Below are positions 4,590 to 57,636 of a stretch of DNA of 64,000 bases, piece after piece. The notes under the pieces are model-generated. The model had not been told where the DNA came from and ran no database searches. It was given only the letters and a program-made list of their open reading frames with translations. Source of the DNA: Octopus sinensis (lineage: Eukaryota); the NCBI RefSeq assembly GCF_006345805.1, contig NC_042999.1, positions 123,442,001 through 123,506,000 on the forward strand. The letters are read 5' to 3'. How positions within the stretch are numbered: the first letter of the stretch is position 1; the number at the start of each line of letters is the position of its first letter. The translations under genes were made by a program, and so were the position numbers.

Positions 4590-4627
<38 letters not shown>

Positions 4628-4636
4628 ATTGTTAAA

Positions 4637-5839
4637 GGTGGTGAGCTGGCAGAATCATTAGCATGCTGGATGAAATGCTTAGCGTAATTTCACCCGTTGC
4701 TACGTTCTGAGTTCAGATTTGTCGAGGTCAACTTTGCCTTTCATCCTTTCAGGGTGAATATAATAAGTATCAGTTGAATATTGGGGTCGATGTAAGCGAC
4801 TCATTTCCACCACCCCACCAAGCTACCCTTGTGGCAAAGATTTGAGATAATAATAATAATAATAATAATAATGATAATAATAATAATAATTATTATTATT
4901 ATTGTTGTTAAGGGCGGTGAGCTAACAGAATTGTTAGCGTGCTAGACAAAATGCTTAGTGGTATTTCACCTGTTGCTATGTTCCGAATCCAAATTCTGCT
5001 GAGGTCAACTTTGCTTTCCATCCTTTCGGAGTGGATAAAATAAGTACCAGCCGAACACTGGAGTTGATGTAATCAACTCATCCCCTCCCCCAAAATTGTT
5101 TCCCTTGTGGCAAAATTTGAAACTATTATTATTATTACTAAGCTGGCAGAATTGTGAGCACTTTGGGCAAAAATACTGCATGACATTTTATCTGTATTTA
5201 TGTTCTGATTTCAAATTCTGCCAAGGTTGACTTTGCCTTTCATCCTTTCTGAGCTGAAAAAAGTAAGTACCAGTTAAGTACTGGGGTCAAAGTATACAAC
5301 TTATGCCTTCCCCTAAACTTGCTGGCCTTATACAAAAATCTGAAACCATTATTATTATTGTTGTTATTATTATTAAAGCAGCGAGCTGGCAGAATCATTA
5401 GCATGCTGGACGAAATGCTTAGTGGTATTTCGCCTGTCTTTACATTCTGAGTTTAAATACTCTTGTGGTCGACTTTGCCTTTCATCCTTTCAGTGTCAAT
5501 AAATTAAGTACCAGTGAAACACTGGGGTCGATGTAATTGACAATCCCTTCCCCACCCAAATTTGAGACCTTATACCTCCAGTAGAAAGGATTATCATTAT
5601 TATTATTATTATTATTATGATTAGGGCAGCAAGCTGACAGAATTATTGACATGCCAGGCAAAATGCTTAGCAGCATTTTGTCAGTCATTCTGTTCTAAGT
5701 TCAAATGTCTCCAAGGCTGACTTTGCCTCTCATCCATTCAGGGTTGATAAAATAAGTACCAATTAAGCACTGAGGTAGATTTAACCAACTAACCCCCTCC
5801 TCTAAAATTTCAAGTCCTGTGTCTAGAGCAGAAAGGATT
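4637..5839 (+). mobile_element. Five head-to-tail copies of a tRNA-derived SINE (family A), separated by (ATT)/(AAT)n
   Basis: Copies at ~4637, 4913, 5140, 5377 and 5623. Each has an A-box-like GAGCTGGCAGAATCRTTAG, a B-box-like GAGTTCAAATTC, the body GTCAACTTTGCCTTTCATCCTTTC...AAGTACCAGT and a microsatellite tail. Confidence 0.9.
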
Positions 5840-10002: not shown

Positions 10003-10468
10003 ATGGAGGAGAAAGGGGGGGAGCGAAGGAAAGATGATGAATGAAAGTGAGGAAAGGAGACGGAAGGGGAAACAAAGAAGAGTAATAAGAATGAGGAAGA
10101 GATAAATATGTAAGAAGAGGAGGAAGGGGTGAGAAGAAAGAGGAGGGAGAGGGGAGGAGCAGGAAGAGGGAGAGGAGGATGAATAGGGGAGGATGATGAA
10201 TAGGGGGAGGAGAATGAAGAGTGGAAGGAGGAGGCAGAGGGGAAGAAGTGGAGGAGGGAAGAAGTGGAGGAGGGAAGAAGTGGAGGAGGGAAGAAGTGGA
10301 GGAGGGAAGAAGTGGAGGAGGGAAGCAGGAAGAAGAAAGGGAGGAGATGAGGAAAAGAAGGAAAAAGAAGGTAAAGAAAATGGAAAAGAAAGAAAAGAAA
10401 AAGAAGGGAGAGGAGGAGAAGGAGGAAATGAAAATGAAGAAGAAACTGTAAGAGAAAGAAAAGAGTAA
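10003..10468. repeat. Polypurine (GA-rich) low-complexity tract with a 21-bp tandem subrepeat
   Basis: Nearly pyrimidine-free on +. GAAGAAGTGGAGGAGGGAAGA recurs about 4 times at 10240-10325. The ORFs here are compositional artefacts. Confidence 0.9.
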
Positions 10469-18720: not shown

Positions 18721-20012
18721 GTGGGTTGGCAAATAAGTTCCCGCTGTTTTTTAAAATTTTGGAATTTATTGCGTTTTTAAATTTTGGAATCTATTTTTTT
18801 CAAGAATTCTATTTTTGAATCATTTTGGAATCTATTTTGCTTTTTTCTAGTTAATTTTAGGTAATTTTTATTTATTTTCAGATCATTAAAATGGAATGTC
18901 TAGTTAAGAAAAACGAGCATTTTTGACACCTCCTTTTTGTTTTTAACGAACGTTCTAAGGCCGCAAAATCTGCTCATGACATTTGTGCTGTGTATGGAGA
19001 GGATGCCATAGCTGAAAGAACTGCTCGTGATTAGTATGCCAAGTTCAAAAATGGAAATTTTTACCTCAAAGACACACCTCGTTCTGGCTGCCCAGTTGAG
19101 TTCAATGAAGAGCGATTAAACCAACTTTTGCATGAAAATTCTCATCAAATGACAACAGAACTGGCAGAGAAAATGAAATCCTCCCACACTGCTATAGAAA
19201 AGCATCTTCACTTGATGGGAAAGGTTTAGAAGTATGGAGCATGGGACGCATGCTTTAAGTGACAGCAACAAAAATCAACAAGCCACAATCTCCACTTATT
19301 TGCTTGCTCATCACCACTCAACTCATAGACACAAGCAATGATTTCTTTACGAATTATTACTGGCAATGAAAAATGGTGCCTGTATATCAATATGAAGCAG
19401 CGTAAGGAATGGCTTAGCCCCAGTAAACAAGCAACACCATTTGTGAAACAAGATCTTCATCCACCTAAAATGATATGTGGATGGTGGGACTGGGAAGGGA
19501 TTATCCATTACGAATTGCTTGAATGGAACCAAATGGTCAATGCAGAACTCTATGTTCAACAGATGGAACGACTCAGCACGGCTATTCAAGAGAAAAGACC
19601 TAATCTTCAGCATGGAGTTCTTCTGCTGCACAACACCCACCCTTATATTGCCAATATGACCAAGGAAGCCATTCAAACACATGGCTGGGAAGTGCTGCCA
19701 CACCCACCATACTCTCCTGATTTGGCACCAACAGATTTCCACTTCTTTCAATCTCTTTCAAATGCTATGCATGAAGTTTCATTCAATACTGATGCAGAAT
19801 TGAGAGCTTAGTTGGATCAATTTTTCGAGTCGAAATTGGGTGATTTCTACCAACAAGGTATTGAAAATCTTGTTGAACGTTGAGAAGAAGTTGTAAACAA
19901 GGGTGAATACATTATTGATTACTTAGCTGTTATTTTTTATTAAACCTTTTAAAAAATTTAAATTTAAAAAAATTTAAATTTTTAAAAATGGCAGGAACTT
20001 ATGCCAACCCAT
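18721..20012 (+). mobile_element. Full-length decayed mariner transposon (~1292 bp)
   Basis: TA TSDs at 18719-20 and 20013-14. TIRs GTGGGTTGGCAAATAAGTTCCCGCTGTTTTT and AAAAATGGCAGGAACTTATGCCAACCCAT. Confidence 0.95.
18891..19920 (+). pseudogene. Mariner transposase pseudogene
   Basis: HTH region (AVYGEDAIAERTARD*YAKFKNGNF..DTPRSG), RIITGNEKW (catalytic D to N), WWDWEGIIHYELL and HPPYSPDLAPTDFHFF. Several stops and frameshifts. Confidence 0.92.
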
Positions 20013-24544: not shown

Positions 24545-24900
24545 TCATCATCATCATTTAACGTCCGTTTTCCATGCTAGCATGGGTTGGACGGTTTAAC
24601 TGGGGTCTGTGAAGCCGGAAGGCTTCATCAGGCCCAGTCAGATTTGGCAGTGTTTCTACGGCTGGATGCCCTTCCTAACGCCAACCACTCCGCGAGTGTA
24701 GTGGGTATTTTTTACGTGCCACCTGCACAGGTGCTAGACAGAGCTGGCAAACGGCCACAAACGGATGGTGCTTTTATGTGTCACTGGCACGGGGCCAGGC
24801 GATGCTGGCAACGGACACGAACGGATGGTGCTTTTACGTGCCACCGACACGGGGGCCAGACAGAGCTGGCAAACGGCCACGAACGGACGGTGCTTTTATT
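24545..24900 (-). mobile_element. RTE-LINE 3' UTR fragment with (GAT)n tail
   Basis: Reverse complement ends CCAACCCATGCTAGCATGGAAAACGGACGTTAAATGATGATGAT, the same tail as the RTE at 56136-57636. Contains ~55-60 bp internal tandem repeats. Confidence 0.85.
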
Positions 24901-26884: not shown

Positions 26885-28146
26885 CAGGGGTTGGACAAAA
26901 TAATGGAAACACCTTAAAATTTCAAACAAATTGATTTTAATATTGGGTAGGACCACATTTGGCAGTAATTACAGCTTGAATTCTACAAGGTATGAACTTG
27001 TACAAAGTTTGAATTGTTTCCAAAGGAATTTTTGTCCATTCTTCAGCTAAAACAGTCTCCAGTTCTTGTAGTGATGATGGTGGAGGATATCAAATCCTTA
27101 CTTGTTTTTCTAAAATGCACCATAAATGTCCAATAATATTGAAATCTGGGGACTGTGGTGTCCAAATAAGATGTTCAACTTCACTAGAATGTTCCTCGTG
27201 CCATTCAGTAACAACTTTAGCTGTATGAATTGATGTATTATCATCCTGAAAGACTGCGTTTCCCTCCGGAAACAGTTCCGCAACCATAGAATGAATTTGA
27301 TTGGATAAAATGCTTAAATAGTCTTGGCTATTAATTCTGCCATGAAGGGAAACCATTGGGCCAGCAGATTTCCAAGATATAACCCTCCAGATCGTCACAG
27401 ACACTCCTCTATGTTCAACAGTTGGAAGAAGGCAGTTTGGGTCAAATGCTTCTTTTGGCAGACTCTGCATGTATACCCGGCCAGTAGTCAGAAATAAGGT
27501 AAAGGATGACTCATCCAAGAAAATAACATTCTTCCACTGCTCTAGGGACTAATTCTGTAGGTTTTTACTCTGCTCTAAACACTTTACAACGTTTGTTTTT
27601 GAAAGTAGTGGTTTTCTGATTGCAGCCCTCCTGTGAAATCCAGCTTTGTACAGCTCCTGGTAAACAGTTTTTGTGGAAACTGGGTTCTCGAGGTGGTCAT
27701 TAAGCTCTGCAGTAAGTTTGGGAGCTGTACTCTTGTGATCCTTTCTAACAATTCGTGTAAGAGTCGGACGGTCCTTATCTGAGAGTTCTGGTTTTCTTCT
27801 GGAGTTTTTTTTCGATGAGGAGGTTTTTCCCTCTTTCTCAAAGGCTGTCATTACTTTCAAGACAGTACTTCTTGATAAAGCAAATATTTCGGCAGTTTTC
27901 ATTATGCTAGTGCCTGCCAAAAATTTGACCTCTTTGAAAGTCCAATAGATCTATCATTTTAATGAATTTTAATTACCTTTTTCTGATCATATCTGAAGAG
28001 AAACAGCAATTTTAGCAAAACATATTAAGCAACACTAAAAATAAATCAAGAAGCATAAAAATAAACAAGCTTTTGATGGTTTTATAGATATTTCAAACTT
28101 ATGATGCTATGATGCTAGACGTTTCCATTGTTTTGTCCAACCCTTG
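26885..28146 (-). mobile_element. Tc1-like transposon (~1262 bp), decayed
   Basis: TA TSDs at 26883-84 and 28147-48. 26-bp TIRs CAGGGGTTGGACAAAATAATGGAAAC and CAAGGGTTGGACAAAACAATGGAAAC (24/26 identical). Confidence 0.95.
27090..27920 (-). pseudogene. Tc1 (DD34E) transposase pseudogene
   Basis: ORF 27549-27920 gives the HTH region and RKPLLS. ORF 27090-27518 gives DESSF...VFQDDN...WTPQSPDFNIIGHLW, with the catalytic E changed to G. Confidence 0.92.
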
Positions 28147-28255: not shown

Positions 28256-28773
28256 ATCATCATCATCGTTTAGCGTCCGCTTTCCATGCTAGCATGGGTT
28301 GGATGGGTCAACTGGGGTCTGTGAAGCTGGAAGGCTTCGTCAGGCCCAGTCAGATCTGGCAGTGTTTCTACGGCTGGATGCCCTTCCTAACGCCAACCAC
28401 TCTGCGAGTGTAGTGGGTGTTTTTTACGTGCCACCTGCACAGGTGCCAGACAGAGCTGGCGAACGGCCACAAACGGATGGTGCTTTTACGTGTCACTGGC
28501 ACGGGGCCAGGCGATGCTGGCAACGGACACGAACGGATGGTGCTTTTACGTGCCACCGACACGGGGCCAGACAGAGCTGGCAAACGGCCTCGAACGGACG
28601 GTGCTTTTACGTGTCACCGGCACGGGGGCCAGCCGAGGCTGGCAACGGACGCGAACGGATGGTGCTTTTACGTGCCACCGACACGGTTGCCAGTCAGAGC
28701 TGGCAAACGGCCACGAGCGGACGGTGCTTTTACGTGTCACCAGCACGGGGGCCAGCCGAGGCTGGCAACGGAT
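28256..28773 (-). mobile_element. RTE-LINE 3' UTR fragment with expanded ~55-60 bp tandem repeats
   Basis: Nearly identical to 24545-24900 but with more copies of CGGAYGGTGCTTTTACGTGYCACCGRCACGGGG... Confidence 0.85.
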
Positions 28774-34643: not shown

Positions 34644-35396
34644 CTAGAATTTAAGAGACTTATGTTTTGCACATATGTCTATGTGTCCACTCGGTGGAAT
34701 CTGTCTAGTACTGGGGTCTTGTATTTGTTGTCGGTGAATGATCAGTCTATTTCTAAGAGTAAGTTTTGTTTGACCTATATAATCTTCATCACATCCTTGA
34801 TATTTGATAGTGTATATTAAATTCCTTGAAGAATATGTAAAGAGATTTTTTACAGTAAAAGTCTGTCCTGATTTGAATTTGTATGTTGTGTCTTCAAAAA
34901 GGTTGATGTTGGTCGGACAATTGGGGCAGCCACACATTTTGACTGTTGGTGTAAGAATTATGGAAGGTAATTTAGCACTTTTGAGGGACTTTGATTGTCT
35001 TTTACTTTTCATTATTTTGTGTATTTCGAGTGCTTGTTTCATTCTTGGATCTTGTTTTAGTAGTAGGATGCTCTGGTGGATAATATTGTAAACCTCTGTG
35101 TTTCTTGGGTTGTGTGTTGTAACAAAGGGTAGAGCATTGGATGTATCTGGAATGTTTTTCGCTTTTCCTAGTTCTTCAATATTTAATGCTTTGGCACATT
35201 CTATTCCATTGTCTATTATCATTAATGGATATTATCTTTTAAGTAGGACTTGTTTTAGTTCCTAGATTCTTTTATTGGGAGTTTTAGAGTTTGAGACAAT
35301 TGTGCAGATTCTTCTTGCTAGATTAAAGGGGATATTATTCTTTATGTGTCTGGAATGGTATAAGGAGAACAGTAAGTATTGTTTAGAATCTGTCTA
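34644..35396 (-). pseudogene. Penelope RT C-terminal/thumb region plus GIY-YIG endonuclease
   Basis: In frame: TDSKQYLLFSLYHSRHIKNNIPFNLARRICTIVSN...*...YPLMIIDNGI...FVTTHNP...NLIYTIKYQGCDEDYIGQTKLTLRNRLIIHRQQI (GIY-YIG signature). Confidence 0.9.
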
Positions 35397-42209: not shown

Positions 42210-43370
42210 GGCATAGGAGTGGCTGTGTGATAAGCAGCTTGCTTACCAACCACATGGTTCCAGGTTCAGTCCTTCTGCATGGCACCTTGGACAAGTGTCT
42301 TCTACTATAGCCTCGAGCTGACCAAAGCCTGGTGAGTGGATTTGATTGATGGAAACTGATAGAAGCCCATCGCATATATATGTGTGTGTTTGTGTGTCTG
42401 TGTTTGTCCCCCCCCCAATATCGCTTGACAACCGATGCTGGTGTGTTTACATCCCCTAACTTAGCGGCTTGGCAAAAATGACCAATAGAATAAGTACTAG
42501 GCTTACAAAGAATGAGTTCTGGGGTAGATTTGCTCGACTAAAGGTGGTGCTCCAACAAGGCCACAGTCAAATGACTGAAACGAGTAAAAGAGTGAAGAGT
42601 ATACCTTCAGTGCACATGTTTATTATTATGCAATATTTTTATCACTGTTTCTTAATCACATACCCTCCAACTAAACAATATTTAGTGATTGAACTGTTTA
42701 ATCATCATTGAGCTTCTTAATATTTCTTTTCTATAAAGCAGCAAACTGGCCAATTTATTAGCATACTGGGCAAAAAATAAAATGCTTCCATCTTTACATT
42801 GTGAGTTCAAATTTCACCGAGGTCAGCTTTGTCTTTTACCCTTTTGGGATCAATAAAATAAGTACCAGTTGATGACTGGTGTCGATATAATCAGCTTACC
42901 CTCTCCCTGCAAATTGCTGGCCTTGAGCCAAAATTTTAAACCAATATTTCCTTTCTACACTATTCTTTATGGCCTGACTGTTTTTGGTTAAGAAGTTTGC
43001 TTCTCAACCAGGTAGCCTTGGGTTCAGTCTTACTGTGTAGTACCTTACGCAAATATCTTCTACTACAACTCCAAGCAGACCAAAGCCTTATGAGTGGATC
43101 TGGTAAACAGAAATTGAAAGAAACCTATTGTATATATATTTCTTTCCTGCTCACAAGGGGCTAAACATAGAGGGGACAAACAAGGACAGACAAAGGGATT
43201 AAGTCGATGACATCGACCCCAGTGCGAAACTGATCCTATATTTATCGACCCCGAAAGGATGAAAGGCAAAGTCAACCTCGGCGGAATTTGAACTCAGAAC
43301 GTAATGACAGACAAAATACCGCTAAGTATTTTGCCTGGCATGCTAACATTTCTGCCAGCTCGCCACCTTG
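42210..43370. mobile_element. SINE cluster: B(+) 42210-42600, A(+) ~42745-42945, partial B(+) ~42975-43140, A(-) ~43150-43370
   Basis: Each matches the family heads and tails described above. Confidence 0.85.
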
Positions 43371-43415
43371 TATATATTGTATATATGTATGTGTGTGTGT
43401 ATATATATGTGTGTG

Positions 43416-43465
<50 letters not shown>

Positions 43466-43747
43466 CAACAATTGAGGGTAAAATTAATTAATTATTAATC
43501 AATTTCACCAAGTATTCAGTATGCAAAGGGACCATTTAAGGCGAATTCAAATTATTACATTATATAAAAGGGCTTAGTAAAATAATTACTTTGCCGCATA
43601 CTGAACTCATTAGAAATAGTAGCTAAAAAAACTTTTTTAAAACTATTTCTAATACTTAAAGAAAACCTCTCTCATATAGTGTTTGCTCAATTCAACTCAC
43701 GAAAGTATGGGGGTAAAGACATTAAAAAATCAAATGCAAAGGTTATT

Positions 43748-43799
43748 TGAGAACGTACGTTTCAAGATTAGTCAACTCGACATTTCTATCATCAGCTCA
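43748..43799 (-). ncRNA. Type I hammerhead ribozyme (element A, inverted arm)
   Basis: Reverse complement of 44420-44471. Confidence 0.75.
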
Positions 43800-44419
43800 G
43801 AACTCCTTGGTTTGGATTTGAAAACACTGAAAGTGGGAGCATACCCTTTCGGCTTCTTATCGCTTCTGAAGATCTGCTCGAAACTAACAGTGCCAGCAAA
43901 CTCAAATATGCAAGCGAAGAATTTCTGCTCTCCCCTTTCCACCAGCGTGGGTTAAAATCAGTAAACACTATGCTTTTTTCGGTAAAATCCGAGGCATTAA
44001 ATAGAGAGTATTAGAAATAGTTTTAAAAAAGTTTTTTTAGCTACTATTTCTAATGAGTTCAGTATGCGGCAAAGTAATTTATTTTACTAAGCCCTTTTAT
44101 ATAATGTAATAATTTGAATTCGCCTTAAATGGTCCCTTTGCATACTGAATACTTGGTGAAATTGATTAATAATTAATTAATTTTACCCTCAATTGTTGAA
44201 ATTATAATTCATCTCTATTTAATGCCTCGGATTTTACCGAAAAAAGCATAGTGTTTACTGATTTTAACCCACGCTGGTGGAAAGGGGAGAGCAGAAATTC
44301 TTCGCTTGCATATTTGAGTTTGCTGGCACTGTTAGTTTCGAGCAGATCTTCAGAAGCGATAAGAAGCCGAAAGCGTATGCTCCCACTTTCAGAGTTTTCA
44401 AATCCAAACCAAGGAGTTC

Positions 44420-44471
44420 TGAGCTGATGATAGAAATGTCGAGTTGACTAATCTTGAAACGTACGTTCTCA
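44420..44471 (+). ncRNA. Type I hammerhead ribozyme (element A)
   Basis: TGAG-CTGATGA-[TAGAAATGTCGAGTTGACTAATCTT]-GAAA-CGTACG-T-T-CTCA. Stem I TGAG/CTCA; stem II AGA/TCT plus GTC/GAC; palindromic stem III ACGTACGT; cleavage predicted after 44467. Confidence 0.8.
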
Positions 44472-44675
44472 AATAACCTTTGCATTTGATTTTTTAATGT
44501 CTTTACCCCCATACTTTCGTGAGTTGAATTGAGCAAACACTATATGAGAGAGGTTTTCTTTAAGTATTAGAAATAGTTTTAAAAAAGTTTTTTTAGCTAC
44601 TATTTCTAATGAGTTCAGTATGCGGCAAAGTAATTTATTTTACTAAGCCCTTTTATATAATATATATATATATAT

Positions 44676-47600
44676 ATACTAAGCAATAAAGGGTTTAGCA
44701 ACGAATTGCCTTACAACATACCGAATTTAGAAATAGCAGTCAAAGAGTTATAGCTATTTCTTCTACTAAAAAGGGAGATCTCAGTAAAAACAGCAATTGG
44801 AAGGCAGACACAAACAGGTAAGAGAGAATGAATTGACGGCAATCTATCATACATTTTTAAGTTATCTACGGACGTACGTTTCGAAATCAAGTTTTTAGGA
44901 AAGCATAAGAATTAAATATTAAATATTAAATAATTCTATCTTACCGAAACTTCTTTTCTCTTCAGCGTAGAATACTATAATCATAAATGATTATATATTA
45001 ATTTTGAGATACTAGAAGGCACCAACTCAACTCAGTATCAGAGCGAGCTAGAATCCGCAACCAGTATCACCAAATTCAATGTGTGAATGAAACGATTGTG
45101 TCACCAGCCCCTTCCCACCGCGTGTAGCCAAAACAAGATGCTGTGGTCATCTACTGAGATAAAATATGGTTATCCGTAATAATGAAGGGTGAAATTAATT
45201 AATTTGGAATAATTATCAATTACACCAAGTAGTCTTCGGCATGTAAAAGCCTCATTCGAGGAAAATTTAAGTAATACTAAGCAATAAAGGGTTTAGCAAC
45301 GAATTGCCTTACCACATACCGAATTTAGAAATAGCAGTCAAAGAGTTATAGCTATTTCTTCTACTAAAAAGGGAGATCTCAGTAAAAACAGCAATTGGAA
45401 GGCAGACACAAACAGGTAAGAGAGAATGAATTGACGGCAATCTATCATACATTTTTAAGTTATCTACGGACGTACGTTTCGAAATCAAGTTTTTAGGAAA
45501 GCATAAGAATTAAATATTAAATATTAAATAATTCTATCTTACCGAAACTTCTTTTCTCTTCAGCGTAGAATACTATAATCATAAATGATTATATATTAAA
45601 TTTTGAGATACTAGAAGGCACCAACTCAACTCAGTATCAGAGCGAGCTAGAATCCGCAACCAGTATCACCAAATTCAATGTGTGAATGAAACGATTGTGT
45701 CACCAGCCCCTTCCACCCGCGTGTAGCCAAAACAAGATGCTGTGGTCATCTACTGAGATAAAATATGGTTATCCGTAATAATGAAGGGTGAAATTAATTA
45801 ATTTGGAATAATTATCAATTACACCAAGTAGTCTTCGGCATGTAAAAGCCTCATTCGAGGAAAATTTAAGTAATACTAAGCAATAAAGGGTTTAGCAACG
45901 AATTGCCTTACCACATACCGAATTTAGAAATAGCAGTCAAAGAGTTATAGCTATTTCTTCTACTAAAAAGGGAGATCTCAGTAAAAACAGCAATTGGAAG
46001 GCAGACACAAACAGGTAAGAGAGAATGAATTGACGGCAATCTATCATACATTTTTAAGTTATCTACGGACGTACGTTTCGAAATCAAGTTTTTAGGAAGC
46101 ATAAGAATTAAATATTAAATATTAAATAATTCTATCTTACCGAAACTTCTTTTCTCTTCAGCGTAGAATACTATAATCATAAATGATTATATATTAAATT
46201 TTGAGATACTAGAAGGCACCAACTCAACTCAGTATCAGAGCGAGCTAGAATCCGCAACCAGTATCACCAAATTCAATGTGTGAATGAAACGATTGTGTCA
46301 CCAGCCCCTTCCCACCCGCGTGTAGCCAAAACAAGATGCTGTGGTCATCTACTGAGATAAAATATGGTTATCCGTAATAATGAAGGGTGAAATTAATTAA
46401 TTTGGAATAATTATCAATTACACCAAGTAGTCTTCGGCATGTAAAAGCCTCATTCGAGGAAAATTTAAGTAATACTAAGCAATAAAGGGTTTAGCAACGA
46501 ATTGCCTTACCACATACCGAATTTAGAAATAGCAGTCAAAGAGTTATAGCTATTTCTTCTACTAAAAAGGGAGATCTCAGTAAAAACAGCAATTGGAAGG
46601 CAGACACAAACAGGTAAGAGAGAATGAATTGACGGCAATCTATCATACATTTTTAAGTTATCTACGGACGTACGTTTCGAAATCAAGTTTTTAGGAAAGC
46701 ATAAGAATTAATATTAAATATTAAATAATTCTATCTTACCGAAACTTCTTTTCTCTTCAGCGTAGAATACTATAATCATAAATGATTATATATTAAATTT
46801 TGAGATACTAGAAGGCACCAACTCAACTCAGTATCAGAGCGAGCTAGAATCCGCAACCAGTATCACCAAATTCAATGTGTGAATGAAACGATTGTGTCAC
46901 CAGCCCCTTCCCACCCGCGTGTAGCCAAAACAAGATGCTGTGGTCATCTACTGAGATAAAATATGGTTATCCGTAATAATGAAGGGTGAAATTAATTAAT
47001 TTGGAATAATTATCAATTACACCAAGTAGTCTTCGGCATGTAAAAGCCTCATTCGAGGAAAATTTAAGTAATACTAAGCAATAAGGGTTTAGCAACGAAT
47101 TGCCTTACCACATACCGAATTTAGAAATAGCAGTCAAAGAGTTATAGCTATTTCTTCTACTAAAAAGGGAGATCTCAGTAAAAACAGCAATTGGAAGGCA
47201 GACACAAACAGGTAAGAGAGAATGAATTGACGGCAATCTATCATACATTTTTAAGTTATCTACGGACGTACGTTTCGAAATCAAGTTTTTAGGAAAGCAT
47301 AAGAATTAAATATTAAATATTAAATAATTCTATCTTACCGAAACTTCTTTTCTCTTCAGCGTAGAATACTATAATCATAAATGATTATATATTAAATTTT
47401 GAGATACTAGAAGGCACCAACTCAACTCAGTATCAGAGCGAGCTAGAATCCGCAACCAGTATCACCAAATTCAATGTGTGAATGAAACGATTGTGTCACC
47501 AGCCCCTTCCCACCCGCGTGTAGCCAAAACAAGATGCTGTGGTCATCTACTGAGATAAAATATGGTTATCCGTAATAATGAAGGGTGAAATTAATTAATT

Positions 47601-50600
47601 TGGAATAATTATCAATTACACCAAGTAGTCTTCGGCATGTAAAAGCCTCATTCGAGGAAAATTTAAGTAATACTAAGCAATAAAGGTTTAGCAACGAATT
47701 GCCTTACCACATACCGAATTTAGAAATAGCAGTCAAAGAGTTATAGCTATTTCTTCTACTAAAAAGGGAGATCTCAGTAAAAACAGCAATTGGAAGGCAG
47801 ACACAAACAGGTAAGAGAGAATGAATTGACGGCAATCTATCATACATTTTTAAGTTATCTACGGACGTACGTTTCGAAATCAAGTTTTTAGGAAAGCATA
47901 AGAATTAAATATTAAATATTAAATAATTCTATCTTACCGAAACTTCTTTTCTCTTCAGCGTAGAATACTATAATCATAAATGATTATATATTAAATTTTG
48001 AGATACTAGAAGGCACCAACTCAACTCAGTATCAGAGCGAGCTAGAATCCGCAACCAGTATCACCAAATTCAATGTGTGAATGAAACGATTGTGTCACCA
48101 GCCCCTTCCCACCCGCGTGTAGCCAAAACAAGATGCTGTGGTCATCTACTGAGATAAAATATGGTTATCCGTAATAATGAAGGGTGAAATTAATTAATTT
48201 GGAATAATTATCAATTACACCAAGTAGTCTTCGGCATGTAAAAGCCTCATTCGAGGAAAATTTAAGTAATACTAAGCAATAAAGGGTTTAGCAACGAATT
48301 GCCTTACCACATACCGAATTTAGAAATAGCAGTCAAGAGTTATAGCTATTTCTTCTACTAAAAAGGGAGATCTCAGTAAAAACAGCAATTGGAAGGCAGA
48401 CACAAACAGGTAAGAGAGAATGAATTGACGGCAATCTATCATACATTTTTAAGTTATCTACGGACGTACGTTTCGAAATCAAGTTTTTAGGAAAGCATAA
48501 GAATTAAATATTAAATATTAAATAATTCTATCTTACCGAAACTTCTTTTCTCTTCAGCGTAGAATACTATAATCATAAATGATTATATATTAAATTTTGA
48601 GATACTAGAAGGCACCAACTCAACTCAGTATCAGAGCGAGCTAGAATCCGCAACCAGTATCACCAAATTCAATGTGTGAATGAAACGATTGTGTCACCAG
48701 CCCCTTCCCACCCGCGTGTAGCCAAAACAAGATGCTGTGGTCATCTACTGAGATAAAATATGGTTATCCGTAATAACGAAGGGTGAAATTAATTAATTTG
48801 GAATAATTATCAATTACACCAAGTAGTCTTCGGCATGTAAAAGCCTCATTCGAGGAAAATTTAAGTAATACTAAGCAATAAAGGTTTAGCAACGAATTGC
48901 CTTACCACATACCGAATTTAGAAATAGCAGTCAAAGAGTTATAGCTATTTCTTCTACTAAAAAGGGAGATCTCAGTAAAAACAGCAATTGGAAGGCAGAC
49001 ACAAACAGGTAAGAGAGAATGAATTGACGGCAATCTATCATACATTTTTAAGTTATCTACGGACGTACGTTTCGAAATCAAGTTTTTAGGAAAGCATAAG
49101 AATTAAATATTAAATATTAAATAATTCTATCTTACCGAAACTTCTTTTCTCTTCAGCGTAGAATACTATAATCATAAATGATTATATATTAAATTTTGAG
49201 ATACTAGAAGGCACCAACTCAACTCAGTATCAGAGCGAGCTAGAATCCGCAACCAGTATCACCAAATTCAATGTGTGAATGAAACGATTGTGTCACCAGC
49301 CCCTTCCCACCCGCGTGTAGCCAAAACAAGATGCTGTGGTCATCTACTGAGATAAAATATGGTTATCCGTAATAACGAAGGGTGAAATAATTAATTTGGA
49401 ATAATTATCAATTACACCAAGTAGTCTTCGGCATGTAAAAGCCTCATTCGAGGAAAATTAAGTAATACTAAGCAATAAAGGGTTTAGCAACGAATTGCCT
49501 TACCACATACCGAATTTAGAAATAGCAGTCAAAGAGTTATAGCTATTTCTTCTACTAAAAAGGGAGATCTCAGTAAAAACAGCAATTGGAAGGCAGACAC
49601 ACAAACAGGTAAGAGAGAATGAATTGACGGCAATCTATCATACATTTTTAAGTTATCTACGGACGTACGTTTCGAAATCAAGTTTTTAGGAAAGCATAAG
49701 AATTAAAATTAAATATTAAATAATTCTATCTTACCGAAACTTCTTTTCTCTTCAGCGTAGAATACTATAATCATAAATGATTATATATTAAATTTTGAGA
49801 TACTAGAAGGCACCAACTCAACTCAGTATCAGAGCGAGCTAGAATCCGCAACCAGTATCACCAAATTCAATGTGTGAATGAACGATTGTGTCACCAGCCC
49901 CTTCCCACCCGCGTGTAGCCAAAACAAGATGCTGTGGTCATCTACTGAGATAAAATATGGTTATCCGTAATAATGAAGGGTGAAATTAATTATTTGGAAT
50001 AATTATCAATTACACCAAGTAGTCTTCGGCATGTAAAAGCCTCATTCGAGGAAAATTTAAGTAATACTAAGCAATAAAGGGTTTAGCAACGAATTGCCTT
50101 ACCACATACCGAATTTAGAAATAGCAGTCAAAGAGTTATAGCTATTTCTTCTACTAAAAAGGAGATCTCAGTAAAAACAGCAATTGGAAGGCAGACACAA
50201 ACAGGTAAGAGAGAATGAATTGACGGCAATCTATCATACATTTTTAAGTTATCTACGGACATACGTTTCGAAATCAAGTTTTTAGGAAAGCATAAGAATT
50301 AAATATTAAATATTAAATAATTCTATCTTACCGAAACTTCTTTTCTCTTCAGCGTAGAATACTATAATCATAAATGATTATATATTAAATTTTGAGATAC
50401 TAGAAGGCACCAACTCAACTCAGTATCAGAGCGAGCTAGAATCCGCAACCAGTATCACCAAATTCATGTGTGAATGAAACGATTGTGTCACCAGCCCCTT
50501 CCCACCCGCGTGTAGCCAAAACAAGATGCTGTGGTCATCTACTGAGATAAAATATGGTTATCCGTAATAACGAAGGGTGAAATTAATTAATTTGGAATAA

Positions 50601-52629
50601 TTATCAATTACACCAAGTAGTCTTCGGCATGTAAAAGCCTCATTCGAGGAAAATTTAAGTAATACTAAGCAATAAAGGTTTAGCAACGAATTGCCTTACC
50701 ACATACCGAATTTAGAAATAGCAGTCAAAGAGTTATAGCTATTTCTTCTACTAAAAAGGGAGATCTCAGTAAAAACAGCAATTGGAAGGCAGACACAAAC
50801 AGGTAAGAGAGAATGAATTGACGGCAATCTATCATACATTTTTAAGTTATCTACGGACGTACGTTTCGAAATCAAGTTTTTAGGAAAGCATAAGAATTAA
50901 ATATTAAATATTAAATAATCTATCTTACCGAAACTTCTTTTCTCTTCAGCGTAGAATACTATAATCATAAATGATTATATATTAAATTTTGAGATACTAG
51001 AAGGCACCAACTCAACTCAGTATCAGAGCGAGCTAGAATCCGCAACCAGTATCACCAAATTCAATGTGTGTGAATGAAACGATTGTGTCACCAGCCCCTT
51101 CCCACCCGCGTGTAGCCAAAACAAGATGATGTGGTCATCTACTGAGATAAAATATGGTTATCCGTAATAATGAAGGGTGAAATTAATTAATTTGGAATAA
51201 TTATCAATTACACCAAGTAGTCTTCGGCATGTAAAAGCCTCATTCGAGGAAAATTTAAGTAATACTAAGCAATAAAGGGTTAGCAACGAATTGCCTTACC
51301 ACATACCGAATTTAGAAATAGCAGTCAAAGAGTTATAGCTATTTCTTCTACTAAAAAGGGAGATCTCAGTAAAAACAGCAATTGGAAGGCAGACACAAAC
51401 AGGTAGAGAGAATGAATTGACGGCAATCTATCATACATTTTTAAGTTATCTACGGACGTACATTTCGAAATCAAGTTTTTAGGAAAGCATAAGAATTAAA
51501 TATTAAATATTAAATAATTCTATCTTACCGAAATTCTTTTCTCTTCAGCGTAGAATACTATAATCATAAATGATTATATATTAAATTTTGAGATACTAGA
51601 AGGCACCAACTCAACTCAGTATCAGAGCGAGCTAGAATCCGCAACCAGTATCACCAAATTCAATGTGTGAATGAAACGATTGTGTCACCAGCCCCTTCCC
51701 ACCCGCGTGTAGCCAAAACAAGATGATGTGGTCATCTACTGAGATAAAATATGGTTATCCGTAATAATGAAGGGTGAAATTAATTAATTTGGAATAATTA
51801 TCAATTACACCAAGTAGTCTTCGGCATGTAAAAGCCTCATTCGAGGAAAATTTAAGTAATACTAAGCAATAAAGGGTTTAGCAACGAATTGCCTTACCAC
51901 ATACCGAATTTAGAAATAGCAGTCAAAGAGTTATAGCTATTTCTTCTACTAAAAAGGGAGATCTCAGTAAAAACAGCAATTGGAAGGCAGACACAAACAG
52001 GTAAGAGAGAATGAATTGACGGCAATCTATCATACATTTTTAAGTTATCTACGGACGTACATTTCGAAATCAAGTTTTTAGGAAAGCATAAGAATTAAAT
52101 ATTAAATATTAAATAATTCTATCTTACCGAAACTTCTTTTCTCTTCAGCGTAGAATACTATAATCATAAATGATTATATATTAAATTTTGAGATACTAGA
52201 AGGCACCAACTCAACTCAGTATCAGAGCGAGCTAGAATCCGCAACCAGTATCACCAAATTCAATGTGTGAATGAAACGATTGTGTCACCAGCCCCTTCCC
52301 ACCCGCGTGTAGCCAAAACAAGATGCTGTGGTCATCTACTGAGATAAAATATGGTTATCCGTAATAACGAAGGGTGAAATTAATTAATTTGGAATAATTA
52401 TCAATTACACCAAGTAGTCTTCGGCATGTAAAAGCCTCATTCGAGGAAAATTTAAGTAATACTAAGCAATAAAGGGTTTAGCAACGAATTGCCTTACCAC
52501 ATACCGAATTTAGAAATAGCAGTCAAAGAGTTATAGCTATTTCTTCTACTAAAAAGGGAGATCTCAGTAAAAACAGCAATTGGAAGGCAGACACAAACAG
52601 GTAAGAGAGAATGAATTGACGGCAATCTA
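44676..52629 (-). repeat. Tandem array of a ~600-bp unit (13 full units plus ~170 bp), element B, with one hammerhead per full unit on the minus strand
   Basis: Unit starts (TACTAAGCAAT) at 44677, 45275, 45874, 46473, 47072, 47671, 48270, 48869, 49466, 50065, 50663, 51263, 51860 and 52460. The units are near-identical, differing by 1-2 bp indels and a few SNPs. Confidence 0.97.
44865..44971 (-). ncRNA. Type I hammerhead ribozyme, first of 13 in the array
   Basis: Minus strand reads TCTACG-CTGAAGA-G(76-nt stem II)C-GAAA-CGTACG-TC-CGTAGA, repeated every ~600 bp. Confidence 0.9.
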
Positions 52630-53099
52630 GCTCGCTCTGATACTGAGTTGAGTTGGTGCCTTCTAGTATCTCAAAATTTAATATATAATCATTTATGATT
52701 ATAGTATTCTACGCTGAAGAGAAAAGAAGTTTCGGTAAGATAGAATTATTTAATATTTAATATTTAATTCTTATGCTTTCCTAAAAACTTGATTTCGAAA
52801 CGTACGTCCGTAGATAACTTAAAAATGTATGATAGATTGCCGTCAATTCATTCTCTCTTACCTGTTTGTGTCTGCCTTCCAATTGCTGTTTTTACTGAGA
52901 TCTCCCTTTTTAGTAGAAGAAATAGCTATAACTCTTTGACTGCTATTTCTAAATTCGGTATGTGGTAAGGCAATTCGTTGCTAAACCCTTTATTGCTTAG
53001 TATTACTTAAATTTTCCTCGAATGAGGCTTTTACATGCCGAAGACTACTTGGTGTAATTGATAATTATTCCAAATTAATTAATTTCACCCTTCATTATT

Positions 53100-53106
<7 letters not shown>
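52626..53106 (+). repeat. Inverted ~480-bp copy of the array unit, ending in (TA)n
   Basis: Reverse complement of unit sequence from TATCCGTAAT through GAGCGAGCTAGA. TCTA microhomology at the inversion point 52626-52629. Confidence 0.95.
52708..52814 (+). ncRNA. Type I hammerhead ribozyme (inverted arm of element B)
   Basis: Stem I TCTACG(52708-13)/CGTAGA(52809-14); CTGAAGA 52714-20; stem II G52721-C52796 (GAAA/TTTC, AAGTTT/AAACTT, AGAATTA/TAATTCT); GAAA 52797-800; GUC cleavage triplet ending at 52808. Confidence 0.9.
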
Positions 53107-53143
<37 letters not shown>

Positions 53144-54406
53144 TATATATATCAATAGTGTGTATGTCCTTGTTTTTGTACCCCATCTCTGGGGCTGCTT
53201 TGTTTAACAGAACCTTTCAAAGTAATACTCCAGCATGGCCAAAGTACAATAAGTGAAACAAGTAAAAGTTAAAAGACTATGGGTATCCTGCTATTAGTTT
53301 TCGTTGCTACTTTTCAGTAGTTGTTATTGTGTTATTTTTAGTAATCTAAAATTTTACAAGTAAATACTGGATTAACACTTTAACAACTTTTGTTCAAGAG
53401 TTCCTTCACAGCCTTCTATATTGGACAGTCAGAAAGCTGTGAAGCAGCTATTGAACAAAGATGGTTCTGAGAGGTTTCATAGACACTTTAATGGACTATA
53501 AATACCACATTAAATATTTAGCAAATTTCAACCCAACATTTAGCTCCATCCTACTTCATTGACATAGTCATAGGCTTAGCTTTCTCAATTCTTATTTGAC
53601 AGAAATACATGAAACCTTGATAAATGCTTTTGGCTTGTTAGTAAATGCATGAGGATTGTGTTTGTTTCTCATAAAGTACTTTCTTTTCATTTGTTGTGAC
53701 GGAAGAGTTCTCTCCATAATATATGAGCTGTCTATAAATTATGTATAAGCACTATAACAATACTAATTTTGAGAAAATTTTACTCTCCTTCTCGTAAGTT
53801 CTTCATTGTTATATTTCATTTTTGGTTGGTTTGTTTTGGTATTAGATATATGAGAATGTGTATGAATGCATGTATATGCTGCAGTATAAATATATAAATA
53901 TTTAAACTTAAAATTGCATCTCAATTTAAATGTAAAGATGATGATATCCTTCCAGTATAACTGTTGAACATATAGATGGTTAGATGAAGAACTTACAATG
54001 CTTTCAGTCAAATTAAATTGACATATGCATGCCAATTAACGCTGCTACAAAAAAATCTTAGCAGTATCTAACATTTTCTCTCTCTCTCTCTCTCTCTCAT
54101 ATCTATCTATCTATCTATCTATATATATATATATATATATGAAAGAAGGTTGGAAAATGCAATTTTAAAGATGCTTATTCACTTGACCGGTTTCACTTTT
54201 TTAGAAAAAGATTGTCAAAAGTAAAATGTAAAGCTTTATATAAGCTTTGTTGTGTTAAGTACTGGTTGTCACAAAAGTATTAAAACACATATATACATTC
54301 TTTGATAATAATAAGAAAATGTTAAAAACAATTTACAAGAAAGTATTTAAGAAAATATTCAACAAAAAGTATTAGGAGTTCAATATAAATCATGTTTGTT
54401 TGGTAG

Positions 54407-56135: not shown

Positions 56136-57636
56136 GAACTAGAGGAGAATTTTCGAGTGTGGAAACAAGGATTAGAATCTAAGGGCCTTAGAGTCAACCT
56201 AGCTAAAACCAAAGTCCTAATAAGTAGGAAGGCAGGCAAACCACAAATCCCTTCAGCTAGATGCCCTGCTCAATCTGTAGAAAAGGTGTAGGTAGAAACT
56301 CTACAAGATGTACCCAGTATAAGCTATGGACACATAAGAGGGGCAGCAATATCAAGTGAAGGCTAACTGGGAAGATAATTTTTCTATGTGGCAGATCCTC
56401 CGGAGCAATAAATGCAGAAAATGTGCAGAGAACAACTTCCACCACATTCCAGGGAGAAAAACTAGAAGTAGTTGATAGCTTCCATTACCTAGGTGACCAA
56501 GTCAGTAGAAGGGAAGGGTGTGCTGAAAGTGTAGCTGCTAGAATAAGAATAGCCTGGGCAAAGTTCAGAGAGCTCTTACGTCTGCTGGTGACAAAGGGCC
56601 TCTCGCTCAGAGTAAAAGGTAGACTGTACAACGCATGTGTACGAACAGCCATGCTACATGGCAGTGAAACATGGGCCGTGACCGCTGAGGACATGCGTAA
56701 GCTAGCAAGGAATGAAGCCAGCATGCTCCGATGGATGTGTAATGTCAGTGTGCATACTCAACAGAGTGTTAGTGCCTTGGGAGAAATGTTGGACCTAAGA
56801 AGCATCAGATATGGTGTGCAAGAGAGATGACTGCACTGATATGGTCACGTGGTGAGAATGGATGTGGATAGCTGTGAGAAAATGCGCCACACCCTAGCAG
56901 TTGAGGGAACCTGTGGAAGAGATAGACCCAGGAAGACCTGGGAGGAGGTGGTGAAGCATGACCTTCAAACATTGGGCCTCACCGAGGCAATGACTAGTGA
57001 CCGAGACCTTTGGAAATATGCTGTGCTTGAGAAGACTCAGCAAGCACAAGTGAGACCATAACCTTGTGGCCTATGCCAGGGGTGTAACCAGTCCACTTAT
57101 GCGTACCTTTCCTTCATTGGACACTAAACTCTGCTTGCGAAGACCTGTTGAGGCAAGTGAAATCAAAATCAAATTCGATGACTGGCATCCATGCTAGTGG
57201 AGCGCTAAGAGTACCATACAAGCGAGATTATTGCCAGAGCAACAAGCTGGCCTCCATAGCGATGGCAGGTAAAAAACACCATTCAAACGTGATTGTTACC
57301 TGCATCGCCTTACTGGCATTTGTGCTGGTGGCACGTGAAAAAACATTTGAGAGAGGTCATTGCCAGTGCCGCTGGACTGGCTCCTGTGCAGGTGGCACAT
57401 AAAAAGCACCATTTAAGCATGGCTGTTGCTAGTACCACTTGACTGGCCATCATATCAGTGACATGTAAAAGCACCTACAACACTCTCAGAGTGGTTAGCG
57501 TTAGAAAGGGCATCCAGCTGTAGAAAATCTGCCAGATCAGATTGGAGTCTGGTGCAGCCATCTGGCTCGCCAGACCTCAGTCAAATCGTCCAACCCATGC
57601 TAGCATGGAAAGTGGACGTTAAACGATGATGATGAT
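56136..57636 (+). mobile_element. 5'-truncated RTE-clade LINE (RT C-terminus plus 3' UTR plus (GAT)n tail)
   Basis: ELEENFRVWKQGLESKGLRVNLAKTKVL...LEVVDSFHYLGDQ...RIRIAWAKFREL...RLYNACVRTAMLHGSETW...YGHVVRM...GRDRPRKTWEEVV...DRDLWK, with stops and a frameshift. The 3' UTR ends CCAACCCATGCTAGCATGG...GATGATGAT. Confidence 0.93.

Follow-up and report, generated by a model that had tools for sequence, protein, structure and literature searches.

A stretch of nearly 8 kb in the genome of Octopus sinensis is built of tandem repeats that each appear to encode a self-cleaving ribozyme, which raises the question of what kind of element this is and how it came to be there. The locus lies in a window of 64,000 nucleotides, the whole stretch of DNA that was analysed, and a sequence-only reading had described it as a tandem array of type I hammerheads and a candidate non-LTR retrozyme. 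Those parts of that description that sequence can test held, including intact cores in 14/14 copies, the non-coding nature of the unit, a GC content of 34%, a strong predicted fold, and a sister family with compensatory changes in helix I. The reading preferred here, with a probability of about 0.7, is that the locus represents two neighbouring non-autonomous, hammerhead-bearing non-LTR retrozyme insertions (families A, 599 nt, and B, 556 nt) in one octopod (TA)n microsatellite, probably placed there by the RT/GIY-YIG machinery of a Penelope-like element (PLE).

The family A array occupies positions 44676 to 52629 of the minus strand, which hold ~13.3 head-to-tail copies of a unit of 596-600 bp. 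The unit measures 599 bp, and a direct-repeat finder resolved 13 copies in register at 596-600 bp spacing between ~44.7 and 52.8 kb; TRF missed the array because its period limit was 500. The boundaries given earlier proved correct apart from a small ambiguity at 44676-44679, where the 3' end (unit position ~192-196) is blurred by ATAC/(TA)n microhomology, while the 5' end lies at 52629 (unit position 25). Apart from repetition of the unit, the direct-repeat finder detected no terminal direct repeats; LTR, PBS, and PPT are absent, and GC content is 34%. The unit had been said to lack any ORF of 60 amino acids or more, and the longest ORF with a start codon indeed measures 59 amino acids, the longest stop-free frame being 66 codons. 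The copies are mutually ~99.5% identical, and most inter-copy differences are 1-nt homopolymer indels; substitutions relative to the consensus amount to ~0.13% per copy, which indicates that insertion or homogenisation was recent. Some substitutions recur in part of the copies (288G in four of them, 330T and 597T in pairs of neighbours) and fit post-insertion exchange at the DNA level better than one-step rolling-circle copying. As products of unequal exchange they also speak for an alternative that we nevertheless consider unlikely. In this view one old insertion, of a retrozyme or of a PLE terminal repeat, was multiplied and homogenised locally in the DNA through unequal crossing-over or gene conversion, and the hammerhead is carried along as a passenger, its transcription and use having ceased. 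A 2026 preprint has proposed that PLE-derived repeats can be amplified locally via unequal crossover.

The family A hammerhead spans 106-107 nt and reads UCUACG-CUGAAGA-(75-76-nt helix II)-GAAA-CGUACG-UC/CGUAGA, the slash marking the predicted cleavage site. Formulated as a structural descriptor, it matched 13 times on the minus strand, at 44865-44971, 45463-45569, 46062-46167, 46661-46766, 47259-47365 (copy 5, the reference copy), 47858-47964, 48457-48563, 49056-49162, 49656-49761, 50252-50358, 50850-50955, 51449-51554, and 52048-52154, and once on the plus strand, at 52708-52814, with no further match elsewhere in the 64-kb window. Thirteen in-register units thus go together with 13 minus-strand hammerheads, as had been claimed. 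Variants among them are 1-nt deletions in helix II (copies 3, 4, 9, 11, and 12), C16.3 to U in copy 10, which gives a G.U wobble in helix III, and C15.2 to U in copies 12 and 13, which gives a U.G wobble. The elements follow each other in the order helix I 5' strand, CUGANGA, helix II hairpin, GAAA, helix III hairpin, UH, and helix I 3' strand, so that helix I is open-ended, as in type I topology, and a G10.1-C11.1 pair closes helix II. The conserved core (C3-U4-G5-A6-N7-G8-A9, G12-A13-A14, A15.1/U16.1, and H17) is present in 14/14 copies of family A and in both hammerheads (2/2) of family B. The canonical type I assignment on the minus strand, the 6-bp stem I, the GUC triplet, and the self-complementary ACGUACGU are all borne out, and the cleavage sites proposed earlier, between 44871 and 44870 on the minus strand (copy 1) and after 52808 on the plus strand, agree with the hammerhead positions. 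The latter site is correct as such but does not belong to the array, since it is located in an inverted partial copy (52630-53105).

The copies descend from one unit, and the 14 family A hammerheads therefore count as one independent observation rather than fourteen. An Infernal-type search, suggested earlier as a check, gave a divided outcome: Rfam Hammerhead_1 (RF00163) aligned to copy 5 (47259-47365, minus strand) over model positions 1-45 of 45 with every core position covered, but the score of 20.2 bits (E = 0.011, short input) stayed under the gathering score of 34, owing to a 72-nt insertion in helix II. When 10 kb was searched, Hammerhead_1 gave no match at the gathering threshold and none at E<=10.

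In family A, helix I comprises 6 bp, whereas the 76 nt of helix II form a 4-bp stem (GAAA/UUUC), an internal loop, and a 68-nt AU-rich hairpin extension that replaces loop 2. A helix II of 76 nt is unusual, as had been remarked, and such a long, weak, AU-rich hairpin could misfold. Helix III consists of the pairs A15.1-U16.1 and C15.2-G16.2 capped by a GUAC tetraloop, a type said to permit monomeric cleavage in invertebrates (PMC7229834). In the minimum-free-energy and centroid folds of the 107-mer helices I and II are formed and helix III is absent from the monomer, while cofolding of two molecules yields an intermolecular helix III of 8 bp (-49.6 kcal/mol versus 2 x -18.6), in line with the self-complementarity of ACGUACGU (duplex -9.8 kcal/mol). 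Cleavage as dimers is possible through this palindromic helix, but with 2 bp and a tetraloop in helix III it may not be required. The folding energy of the hammerhead itself is unexceptional (z = -1.06). The unit as a whole folds strongly, at -153.2 kcal/mol for the circular form of family A (z = -5.5, 65% paired) and z = -4.3 for that of family B, and the linear family A monomer is more stable in the sense (z = -6.3) than in the antisense orientation (z = -2.0). The motif AUAAC directly 3' of helix I is kept in both families.

Three features had escaped the sequence-only reading, namely the inverted copy, family B, and the PLE-type anatomy of the insertions. The inverted, 5'-truncated family A copy (52630-53105, plus strand) runs from unit position 421 through the hammerhead to ~297, where it has a 3' end of the long 'tail' type; it adjoins the array 5' end head-to-head at a TCTA microhomology, and a (TA)n microsatellite (53104-53152) forms the right target flank beside it. 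Family B (43463-44661, 556-bp unit) is a head-to-head pair just upstream of the family A array, which consists of a minus-strand copy of ~545 nt (0.98 unit, 43463-44007) with its 5' end at unit position 301 and a plus-strand copy of 1.17 units in the 556-bp register (44007-44661). The 3' end of the minus copy is of the long type, ~286-289 nt past the cleavage site, and adjoins the (TA)n/(TG)n microsatellite of the left target flank (43371-43462), while that of the plus copy is of the short type, ~189-194 nt past the cleavage site. A short (TA)n tract (44657-44678) lies between the latter and the 3' end of the family A array.

Family B carries one hammerhead per orientation, at 43746-43801 on the minus strand and 44418-44473 on the plus strand, the minus copy reading UCUGAG-CUGAUGA-(25-nt helix II)-GAAA-CGUACG-UU/CUCAAA. 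Helix II has a U.U at 10.1/11.1 in place of a G10.1-C11.1 pair, together with three pairs, and helix I contains a C.A mismatch, in view of which this hammerhead may be crippled; Rfam Hammerhead_1 did not detect it. That the motif arose by chance in AT-rich satellite DNA, and that the inverted junctions reflect chimeric, folded-back long reads, is barely credible. Most differences between family A copies are of the homopolymer kind typical of long-read error, and copy number in such arrays is often mis-assembled. However, the strict descriptor turned up by chance only ~0.015 times per 64 kb when sequences were simulated by a Markov model, the independent, diverged family B has the same motif at the same unit position, and a fold-back chimera would give a perfect palindrome, whereas the arms found here have asymmetric spacers of 203-204 nt and end at different unit positions.

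Comparison of the two families indicates what has been conserved between them. They are 55% identical overall (45% diverged) and 20-42% identical around the ribozyme, and yet 17/19 core and helix III positions are the same. N7 and H17, the positions that a hammerhead core leaves free to vary, account for both differences, and in helix I two base pairs were exchanged by compensatory double changes (A-U to G-C and C-G to A-U). Together, the kept core and the paired changes in helix I argue for selection on the ribozyme during the time that separates A from B, as judged from these two families. Outside the hammerhead, a block of 200 nt (unit positions ~100-297) is 58-76% identical versus 20-40% elsewhere. 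Covariation of the global structure was no better than expected, as 39% of changed pairs were kept against 36-50% in slid controls. A satellite that had outlived the use of its ribozyme is difficult to reconcile with a core that changes only at N7 and H17 and with helix I pairing kept across families 45% apart. Moreover, both insertions are very young (family B arms 99% complementary, family A copies ~99.5% identical), pointing to a recently active source for each family, and amplification at the DNA level alone leaves unexplained why both have inverted 5'-truncated partners with different 3' ends.

These partners are part of an anatomy that the two insertions share. In both families the copies have an inverted 5'-truncated partner at their 5' end, (TA)n adjoins the 3' end in 4/4 cases, the 3' ends fall at two common unit positions ~100 nt apart (alignment columns 205/197 and 310/306), and each insertion has a ~100-nt 3' extension, or 'tail', on one side only. 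PLEs, which have been reported from octopus genomes, are likewise described as forming partial tandems next to an inverted copy truncated at its 5' end, with a bias towards (TA)n and a tail on one side, there of 30-40 bp (PMC8557442). For the PLE PAc, biochemistry has demonstrated cutting and extension of the two strands of AT-rich DNA, and reverse transcription that starts from two internal positions past the hammerhead (PMC11167929). The same study found the PAc hammerhead dispensable for insertion in vitro and no in vivo reads ending at its cut site (PMC11167929), which is compatible with a hammerhead that is merely carried along in a DNA-level satellite. The window itself contains, outside the array, a 5'-truncated remnant of a PLE-type GIY-YIG endonuclease ORF with a Cys-rich linker (34644-35222, minus strand). 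This ORF shares 62% identity with a protein whose GIY-YIG domain exceeds the Pfam cutoff and which follows an ORF with a match to reverse transcriptase; at its 3' end (~33840) the remnant, too, borders a (TA)n/(TG)n tract. A LINE-type fragment is present near the array as well, and its named relatives are all from Octopus bimaculoides, which fits a cephalopod host.

Yet another origin would make the array a series of pseudo-LTRs left by an autonomous PLE, its RT-EN ORF having been lost by deletion or being located beyond the window. PLE hammerheads are indeed located in pseudo-LTRs and PLEs form partial tandems (PMC8557442), and Xenopus retrozymes were placed as sister to PLE pseudo-LTRs (2026 preprint). 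Such an origin is nonetheless highly improbable here: 13 consecutive units contain no ORF >59 amino acids and no RT or EN coding trace, no single ORF with RT and GIY-YIG was found between 43463 and 53105, the A and B units have no sequence similarity to the PLE remnant of the window or its relative L001, and the canonical 6-bp helix I and real helix III differ from the minimal variants of metazoan PLEs.

For the retrozyme insertions favoured here, we infer that family A units are transcribed, cleaved, and circularised, as we do the identity of the mobilising enzyme. Read-through transcription of the minus strand would yield multimeric RNA, in which each type I hammerhead would cut after GUC, acting either alone, by virtue of its 2-bp helix III and GUAC tetraloop, or paired through the 8-bp palindromic ACGUACGU helix between copies. 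Monomers of ~599 nt with 5'-OH and 2',3'-cyclic phosphate ends would be released, with predicted 5' ends at CGUAGAUAAC, and could be circularised by host tRNA ligase into a highly base-paired circRNA with a GUC/CGUAGA junction. A PLE protein might nick both strands of AT-rich DNA, reverse transcription would begin at one of two internal RNA sites, ~190 or ~295 nt downstream of the cleavage site, the reverse transcriptase would copy a multimer or run round the circle, and two cDNAs would be joined head-to-head. Internal initiation would be needed because neither a circle nor a multimer has a defined 3' end. Tentatively, and with the odds somewhat against it, the common 200-nt block and the two shared cDNA start points could represent a signal in cis that lets the reverse transcriptase of an octopus PLE recognise the RNA of retrozymes and initiate internally. 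If so, the locus would be evidence, drawn from insertion sites in an invertebrate, for the partnership of PLEs and retrozymes that has been proposed but not proven, and would supply a defined RNA module to test; according to a 2020 review no conserved motif pointing to a mobilising element was known.

Two diverged families, each recently inserted, would imply active sources. Further copies of A or B were found neither in the remaining 54 kb of the window nor in the accessible collections by pattern, ORF, and protein routes, and this lack of another locus agrees with a single insertion amplified in place. Besides the absence of further copies, points against the retrozyme/PLE reading are the sub-threshold Rfam score and the failure of Rfam to pick up family B, the unexceptional folding energy of the hammerhead, the global covariation at the level of the controls, the lack of similarity to the PLE sequences compared, and the ~100-nt tail, compared with 30-40 bp. 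The literature searched contained no report of a hammerhead retrozyme in cephalopods, in agreement with the earlier impression that this family was undescribed there.

Among known systems, newt satellite 2 and Schistosoma Sm-alpha are tandem satellites with units of ~330 bp that give rise to transcripts with self-cleaving type I hammerheads; these have a short helix II and a defined loop 2, and their short palindromic helix III permits double-hammerhead (dimer) cleavage. In comparison, helix III of octopus family A has 2 bp and a tetraloop, and a dimer may not be obligatory. The canonical metazoan type I hammerhead (PMC4209133) combines a helix I of 6 bp and a helix II of 4 bp with tertiary contacts between loops 1 and 2; its 6-bp and 4-bp geometry is kept in A and B, the four helix II positions of B being the U.U and three pairs. 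With PLE insertions (PMC8557442, PMC11167929) the locus shares partial tandems beside which an inverted 5'-truncated copy lies, insertion into AT-rich/(TA)n DNA, a microhomology junction, two alternative 3' ends past the hammerhead, and a tail at one end only. Unlike PLEs, the A and B units are without an RT/GIY-YIG ORF, the tail is ~100 nt instead of 30-40 bp, the family A hammerhead is canonical rather than minimal, and the units have no sequence similarity to the PLE fragments compared.

The locus also resembles metazoan non-LTR retrozymes, the tandem repeats with type I hammerheads of coral, mussel, and axolotl that are expressed as circRNAs (Cervera & de la Pena 2020, PMC7229834). Family A likewise consists of head-to-tail non-coding repeats with a type I hammerhead in each (PMC7229834), has a low GC content (34%, criterion <45-50%), and lacks LTR, PBS, and PPT (PMC7229834, PMC7761336). 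Further similarities to these retrozymes are the predicted high self-pairing of A and B RNA, the 6-bp helix I, the palindromic tetraloop on a 2-bp helix III, and the coexistence of PLEs in the genome, here as the GIY-YIG remnant at 34644-35222 (PMC7229834); even the U.U with which helix II begins in family B had been seen before, in axolotl Amex2 (PMC7229834). Differences are the helix II of family A, a 4-bp stem with a 68-nt AU-rich hairpin in place of a small loop 2, and the unit sizes of 599 bp (A) and 556 bp (B) against 170-400 bp (PMC7229834). Monomers were put at 150-450 bp in the 2020 retrozyme papers (PMC7229834, PMC7761336), but animal retrozymes are now published with consensus lengths from 51 to 972 bp, the mean in ray-finned fish being 650 bp (2026 preprint), so that a ~600-nt unit is not exceptional and the earlier argument that it exceeds known animal retrozymes is weakened. 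Whereas the retrozymes of PMC7229834 are expressed, with circRNAs, octopus A and B are known from DNA and come from a cephalopod host. Taken together, the locus looks like a known kind of element, a retrozyme, in a host that is new with respect to the literature searched.

Retrozymes are among the few genome-encoded animal sources of abundant ribozyme-processed circular RNA. In the octopus window, 44676-52629 had been described by the sequence-only reading as a tandem array with hammerheads on the minus strand, which was confirmed both by a direct-repeat finder (13 in-register copies, ~44.7-52.8 kb) and by a structural descriptor calling for a helix I no shorter than 6 bp, a closed helix II and a short helix III, together with the CUGANGA, GAAA and UH elements. 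Across the 64 kb, the only matches to the descriptor were occurrences of one 106-107-nt motif, 13 on the minus strand and one on the plus strand; its chance rate was 0.015 per window (3 matches in 200 first-order Markov simulations). The array was not detected by TRF only because the longest period allowed was 500. The copies of this family (family A) are spaced at 596-600 bp, and monomers cut in silico at the predicted cleavage sites are 596-600 nt long and ~99.5% identical, but as the differences among them, nearly all of which are 1-nt homopolymer deletions or indels, look like residual long-read error and possibly are, the exact lengths, and perhaps also the copy number, are to be taken with caution. 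Substitutions occur at only five sites, two of which are CpG C-to-U changes in helix III that each turn a C-G pair into a wobble. Some substitutions are common to subsets of the copies, which makes some post-insertion exchange at the DNA level likely as well. The 14 family A hammerheads derive from one unit and therefore represent a single independent observation; their uniform integrity indicates that the array is young and is not evidence of separate selection on each copy.

On re-examination, the proposed coordinates and cleavage positions proved correct, as did the 6 bp of helix I, the 76 nt of helix II, and the palindrome ACGUACGU. The predicted ribozyme of family A reads 5'-UCUACG, CUGAAGA, G-(helix II, 76 nt)-C, GAAA, CGUACG, UC and, beyond the cleavage site, CGUAGA-3', in type I topology, and the predicted cut junction of the unit lies between ...ACGUACGUC and CGUAGAUAAC... 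Helix II opens with 4 bp (GAAA/UUUC); an A.A/G.G internal loop separates these from a long, imperfectly paired hairpin whose distal part is (UUUAAUA)-like. In both the minimum free energy and the centroid fold of the 107-mer, helices I and II were formed in the hammerhead layout and helix III was open. The folding energy was unexceptional (z = -1.06) owing to the AU-rich helix II, and the case for a hammerhead is thus based on the motif and not on thermodynamics. In the monomer, helix III would comprise A15.1-U16.1 and C15.2-G16.2 with a GUAC cap; pairing of two copies through their 8-nt palindrome would give an intermolecular helix, with a predicted energy of -49.6 kcal/mol for the dimer versus -37.2 kcal/mol for two monomers.

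In the covariance-model search suggested in the sequence-only reading, no Rfam hammerhead was found at the gathering threshold in the whole window, nor at E<=10 in a 10-kb search. With a 171-nt input, Hammerhead_1 aligned from end to end (all 45 positions) at precisely 47259-47365 (-), but the score of 20.2 bits (E = 0.011) is below the gathering score of 34. This alignment departs from the model only in having 72 nt at a place for which about 10 are expected. Scanning of metagenome data with GAAACGTACGTYCNNNRATAAC returned 5 matches, which were dismissed as chance since the CUGANGA box was absent from all of them.

Next to the array, the string GAAACGUACGU recurs at 43753 (minus) and 44456 (plus), in both cases within the 556-bp unit of a diverged sister family (family B), of which a minus-sense copy (43463-44007) lies head-to-head with a plus-sense copy of 1.17 units (44007-44661). 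The A and B units are collinear and 55% identical overall, with an identity of 58-76% over unit positions ~100-300 and of 20-42% around the ribozyme; a G-rich motif near unit position 350 is common to both. The predicted B hammerhead reads UCUGAG, CUGAUGA, a 25-nt helix II, GAAA, CGUACG, UU and, after the cleavage site, CUCAAA. In the core and helix III, 17/19 positions are identical between the families (for at least 17, P = 1.5e-3 if the background identity is 55% and 1e-5 if it is 40%), and the two differences fall at N7 and H17, the two positions of the core at which variation is known to be tolerated (P ~0.006 for this placement alone). Moreover, helix I pairing is kept by two double changes (A-U to G-C and C-G to A-U), with one C.A mismatch in B. 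Family B also has a U.U at 10.1/11.1, which is likely to weaken its hammerhead; a U.U at the base of helix II has a precedent in axolotl Amex2 (PMC7229834). Whole-unit covariation, assessed by scoring pairs predicted from A alone in B wherever B differs, was no better than in slid-partner controls (39% of pairs kept versus 36-50%), and constraint is consequently claimed for the ribozyme and not for the global fold. As judged from two families at one locus, the ribozyme has been under constraint since A and B split.

In the sense direction, the A array runs from 52629 (unit position 25) to 44676-44679 (~192-196), where it meets a (TA)n tract. Its 5' end adjoins, across a TCTA microhomology, an inverted A copy (52630-53105) that runs from unit position 421 through a complete hammerhead to a 3' end at ~297 against another (TA)n tract. 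The B pair is similarly arranged head-to-head, and both of its 3' ends lie on (TA)n, at distances of ~189-194 nt and ~286-289 nt past the cleavage site. In the A/B alignment, columns 205 and 197 hold the short 3' ends and columns 310 and 306 the long ones, so that the two families, 45% diverged, have two preferred 3' termini in common; only one end of each insertion carries the extra ~100-nt segment. The 5' truncation points are unrelated (25 and 421 of 599 in A; 301 and 96 of 556 in B). The spacers between the inverted-repeat arms at the head-to-head junctions are asymmetric and measure 203 nt in A (52630-52832) and 204 nt in B (44008-44211), a near-equality that could reflect a constraint on cDNA joining or, with n = 2, coincidence. 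An artefact of fold-back reads was considered for these junctions and rejected in view of the asymmetric spacers and the different 3' ends. Both insertions are evidently of recent origin and very young.

Published insertions of Penelope-like elements (PLEs) consist of partial tandems, often with a directly adjoining inverted copy, itself 5'-truncated, on the 5' side, and have a strong bias toward microsatellites, including (TA)n, and a "tail" at one end only (PMC8557442). The anole PLE protein, in purified form, cuts both strands of AT-rich DNA and extends them, and it reverse transcribes from two internal RNA sites downstream of the hammerhead, the tail being the segment between them (PMC11167929). 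The octopus locus agrees with PLE insertions point for point, except that its tail is ~100 nt versus the published 30-40 bp. At the level of sequence, it is an array of intact predicted type I hammerheads with a PLE-type insertion anatomy. Elsewhere in the window, an ORF at 34644-35222 (-) shares 62% identity with P0001, a protein of the Tara Oceans metagenome with a GIY-YIG domain above the Pfam cutoff and a C-x4-C-x2-C linker, encoded directly downstream of an ORF matching RVT_1 (E = 3e-6). This ORF is a 5'-truncated PLE-type remnant with a GIY-YIG endonuclease and Cys-rich linker; its 3' end at ~33840 abuts (TA)n/(TG)n, and the end of its 3' UTR resembles that of its relative. As read from this remnant, a PLE-type enzyme exists in this genome. 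A relaxed scan for hammerheads in the remnant and in L001, a PLE relative, found none, and comparison of units A and B with the rest of the window and L001 (blastn at word size 7, nhmmer) yielded nothing significant; no sequence similarity was found between the units and these PLE fragments.

The sense monomer of family A folds at -160.1 kcal/mol (z = -6.3, versus -2.0 for the antisense), with helix I predicted to close a ~490-nt body of the unit, and circular folds gave z = -5.5 with 65% of bases paired for A and z = -4.3 for B. These predictions fit the description of retrozymes as "stable, highly self-paired circRNA" (PMC7229834, PMC7761336). In the proposed cycle, minus-strand transcription of the A array would be followed by hammerhead cleavage after GUC, as monomer or dimer, and by ligation of the cleaved RNA by the host tRNA ligase. 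A PLE reverse transcriptase would start internally on multimeric or circular RNA, at ~+190 or ~+295, cDNA would be synthesised from each strand of a cleaved (TA)n target, and the two cDNAs would be joined head-to-head via microhomology. As a processed linear monomer cannot yield a 13-mer, uncleaved multimer or rolling-circle copying of a circle would be needed.

Several other features were observed in the window. A Tc1-like transposase in two ORFs (HTH_Tnp_Tc3_2 and DDE_3; 27090-27920, minus strand) is flanked by two arrays, in one orientation, of a GC-rich 61-62-bp minisatellite (TTTTACGTGCCACCGGCACGGGG...; 24710-24898 and 28422-28772), and these arrays may represent the subterminal repeats of some larger element. 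At 19338-19811 (+) lies a fragment of a mariner-type transposase (Pfam Transposase_1, E = 2e-19), overlapped by an antisense ORF. An ORF fragment in a locally GC-richer stretch (44%) at 56423-56830 (+) resembles, on inspection by eye, the C-terminal portion of a LINE-type reverse transcriptase; it carries no Pfam domain, RVT_1 being present only in a weak match (P0017), and its named relatives are all uncharacterised Octopus bimaculoides proteins with 68-85% identity, which supports an octopod origin of the sequence. A short interspersed repeat of the type GGCGGTGAGCT...GCTTAGCGG...CCGAGGTCAAC looks like a SINE and occurs in both orientations, often beside TA microsatellites, at 4613-5120 (+), 42791-42898, 43255-43360 (-), and ~25.5, 35.7, and 55.3 kb, with one copy directly upstream of the (TA)n tract that flanks the retrozyme locus on the left; ARAGORN found no tRNA-like gene in the window. 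Finally, a purine-rich GGA/GAG-type block at 10114-10432, with a perfect 16-mer repeated 5.4 times (GGGAAGAAGTGGAGGA) and strong GC skew, is unrelated to the retrozyme finding.

The absence of an ORF of 60 aa or more from the unit, as had been claimed, was upheld: ORFs with a start codon reach 59 aa at most, and no phase of the tandem has a stop-free frame of more than 66 codons. Exact look-up of the incidental 59-aa and 42-aa ORFs in public assemblies gave no record, and a homology search with the 66-codon frame gave no candidate. For want of an ORF, the element is not an autonomous PLE, and a protein-coding satellite was rejected on the same ground. A plant-type LTR retrozyme was also rejected, as the hammerhead is of type I and not III, and LTR, PBS, and PPT are lacking. 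Judged by sequence-level criteria, the locus is probably a non-LTR retrozyme, with the qualifications that its length falls in the newer size range only and its score below the Rfam threshold. The earlier argument for high novelty from the ~600-nt size fails, since retrozymes of 51-972 bp have been reported (2026 preprint). The expectation that the family is unreported in cephalopods held, as none of the papers searched ties hammerheads or retrozymes to this group; a detailed 2026 repeat annotation of Octopus vulgaris lists PLEs and mentions neither hammerheads nor retrozymes.

The locus provides a probable cephalopod example of retrozymes and bears on how these elements are copied back into DNA. 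It is unusually legible in that two diverged, very young families lie adjacent, each with the full PLE-type anatomy. Their two common 3' start points render testable the hypothesis that a PLE reverse transcriptase initiates internally on a conserved retrozyme module, and the main interest is this concrete handle on how PLE machinery might recognise retrozyme RNA. Moreover, the family A ribozyme is a natural test of the helix II extension tolerated by a type I hammerhead. The kind of element, the ribozyme, the size range, and the proposed PLE link have all been published, and the locus is therefore an informative specimen and not a new principle; what sets it apart from described retrozymes is that helix II of family A is long, that the host is a cephalopod, and that the insertion anatomy is so clear.
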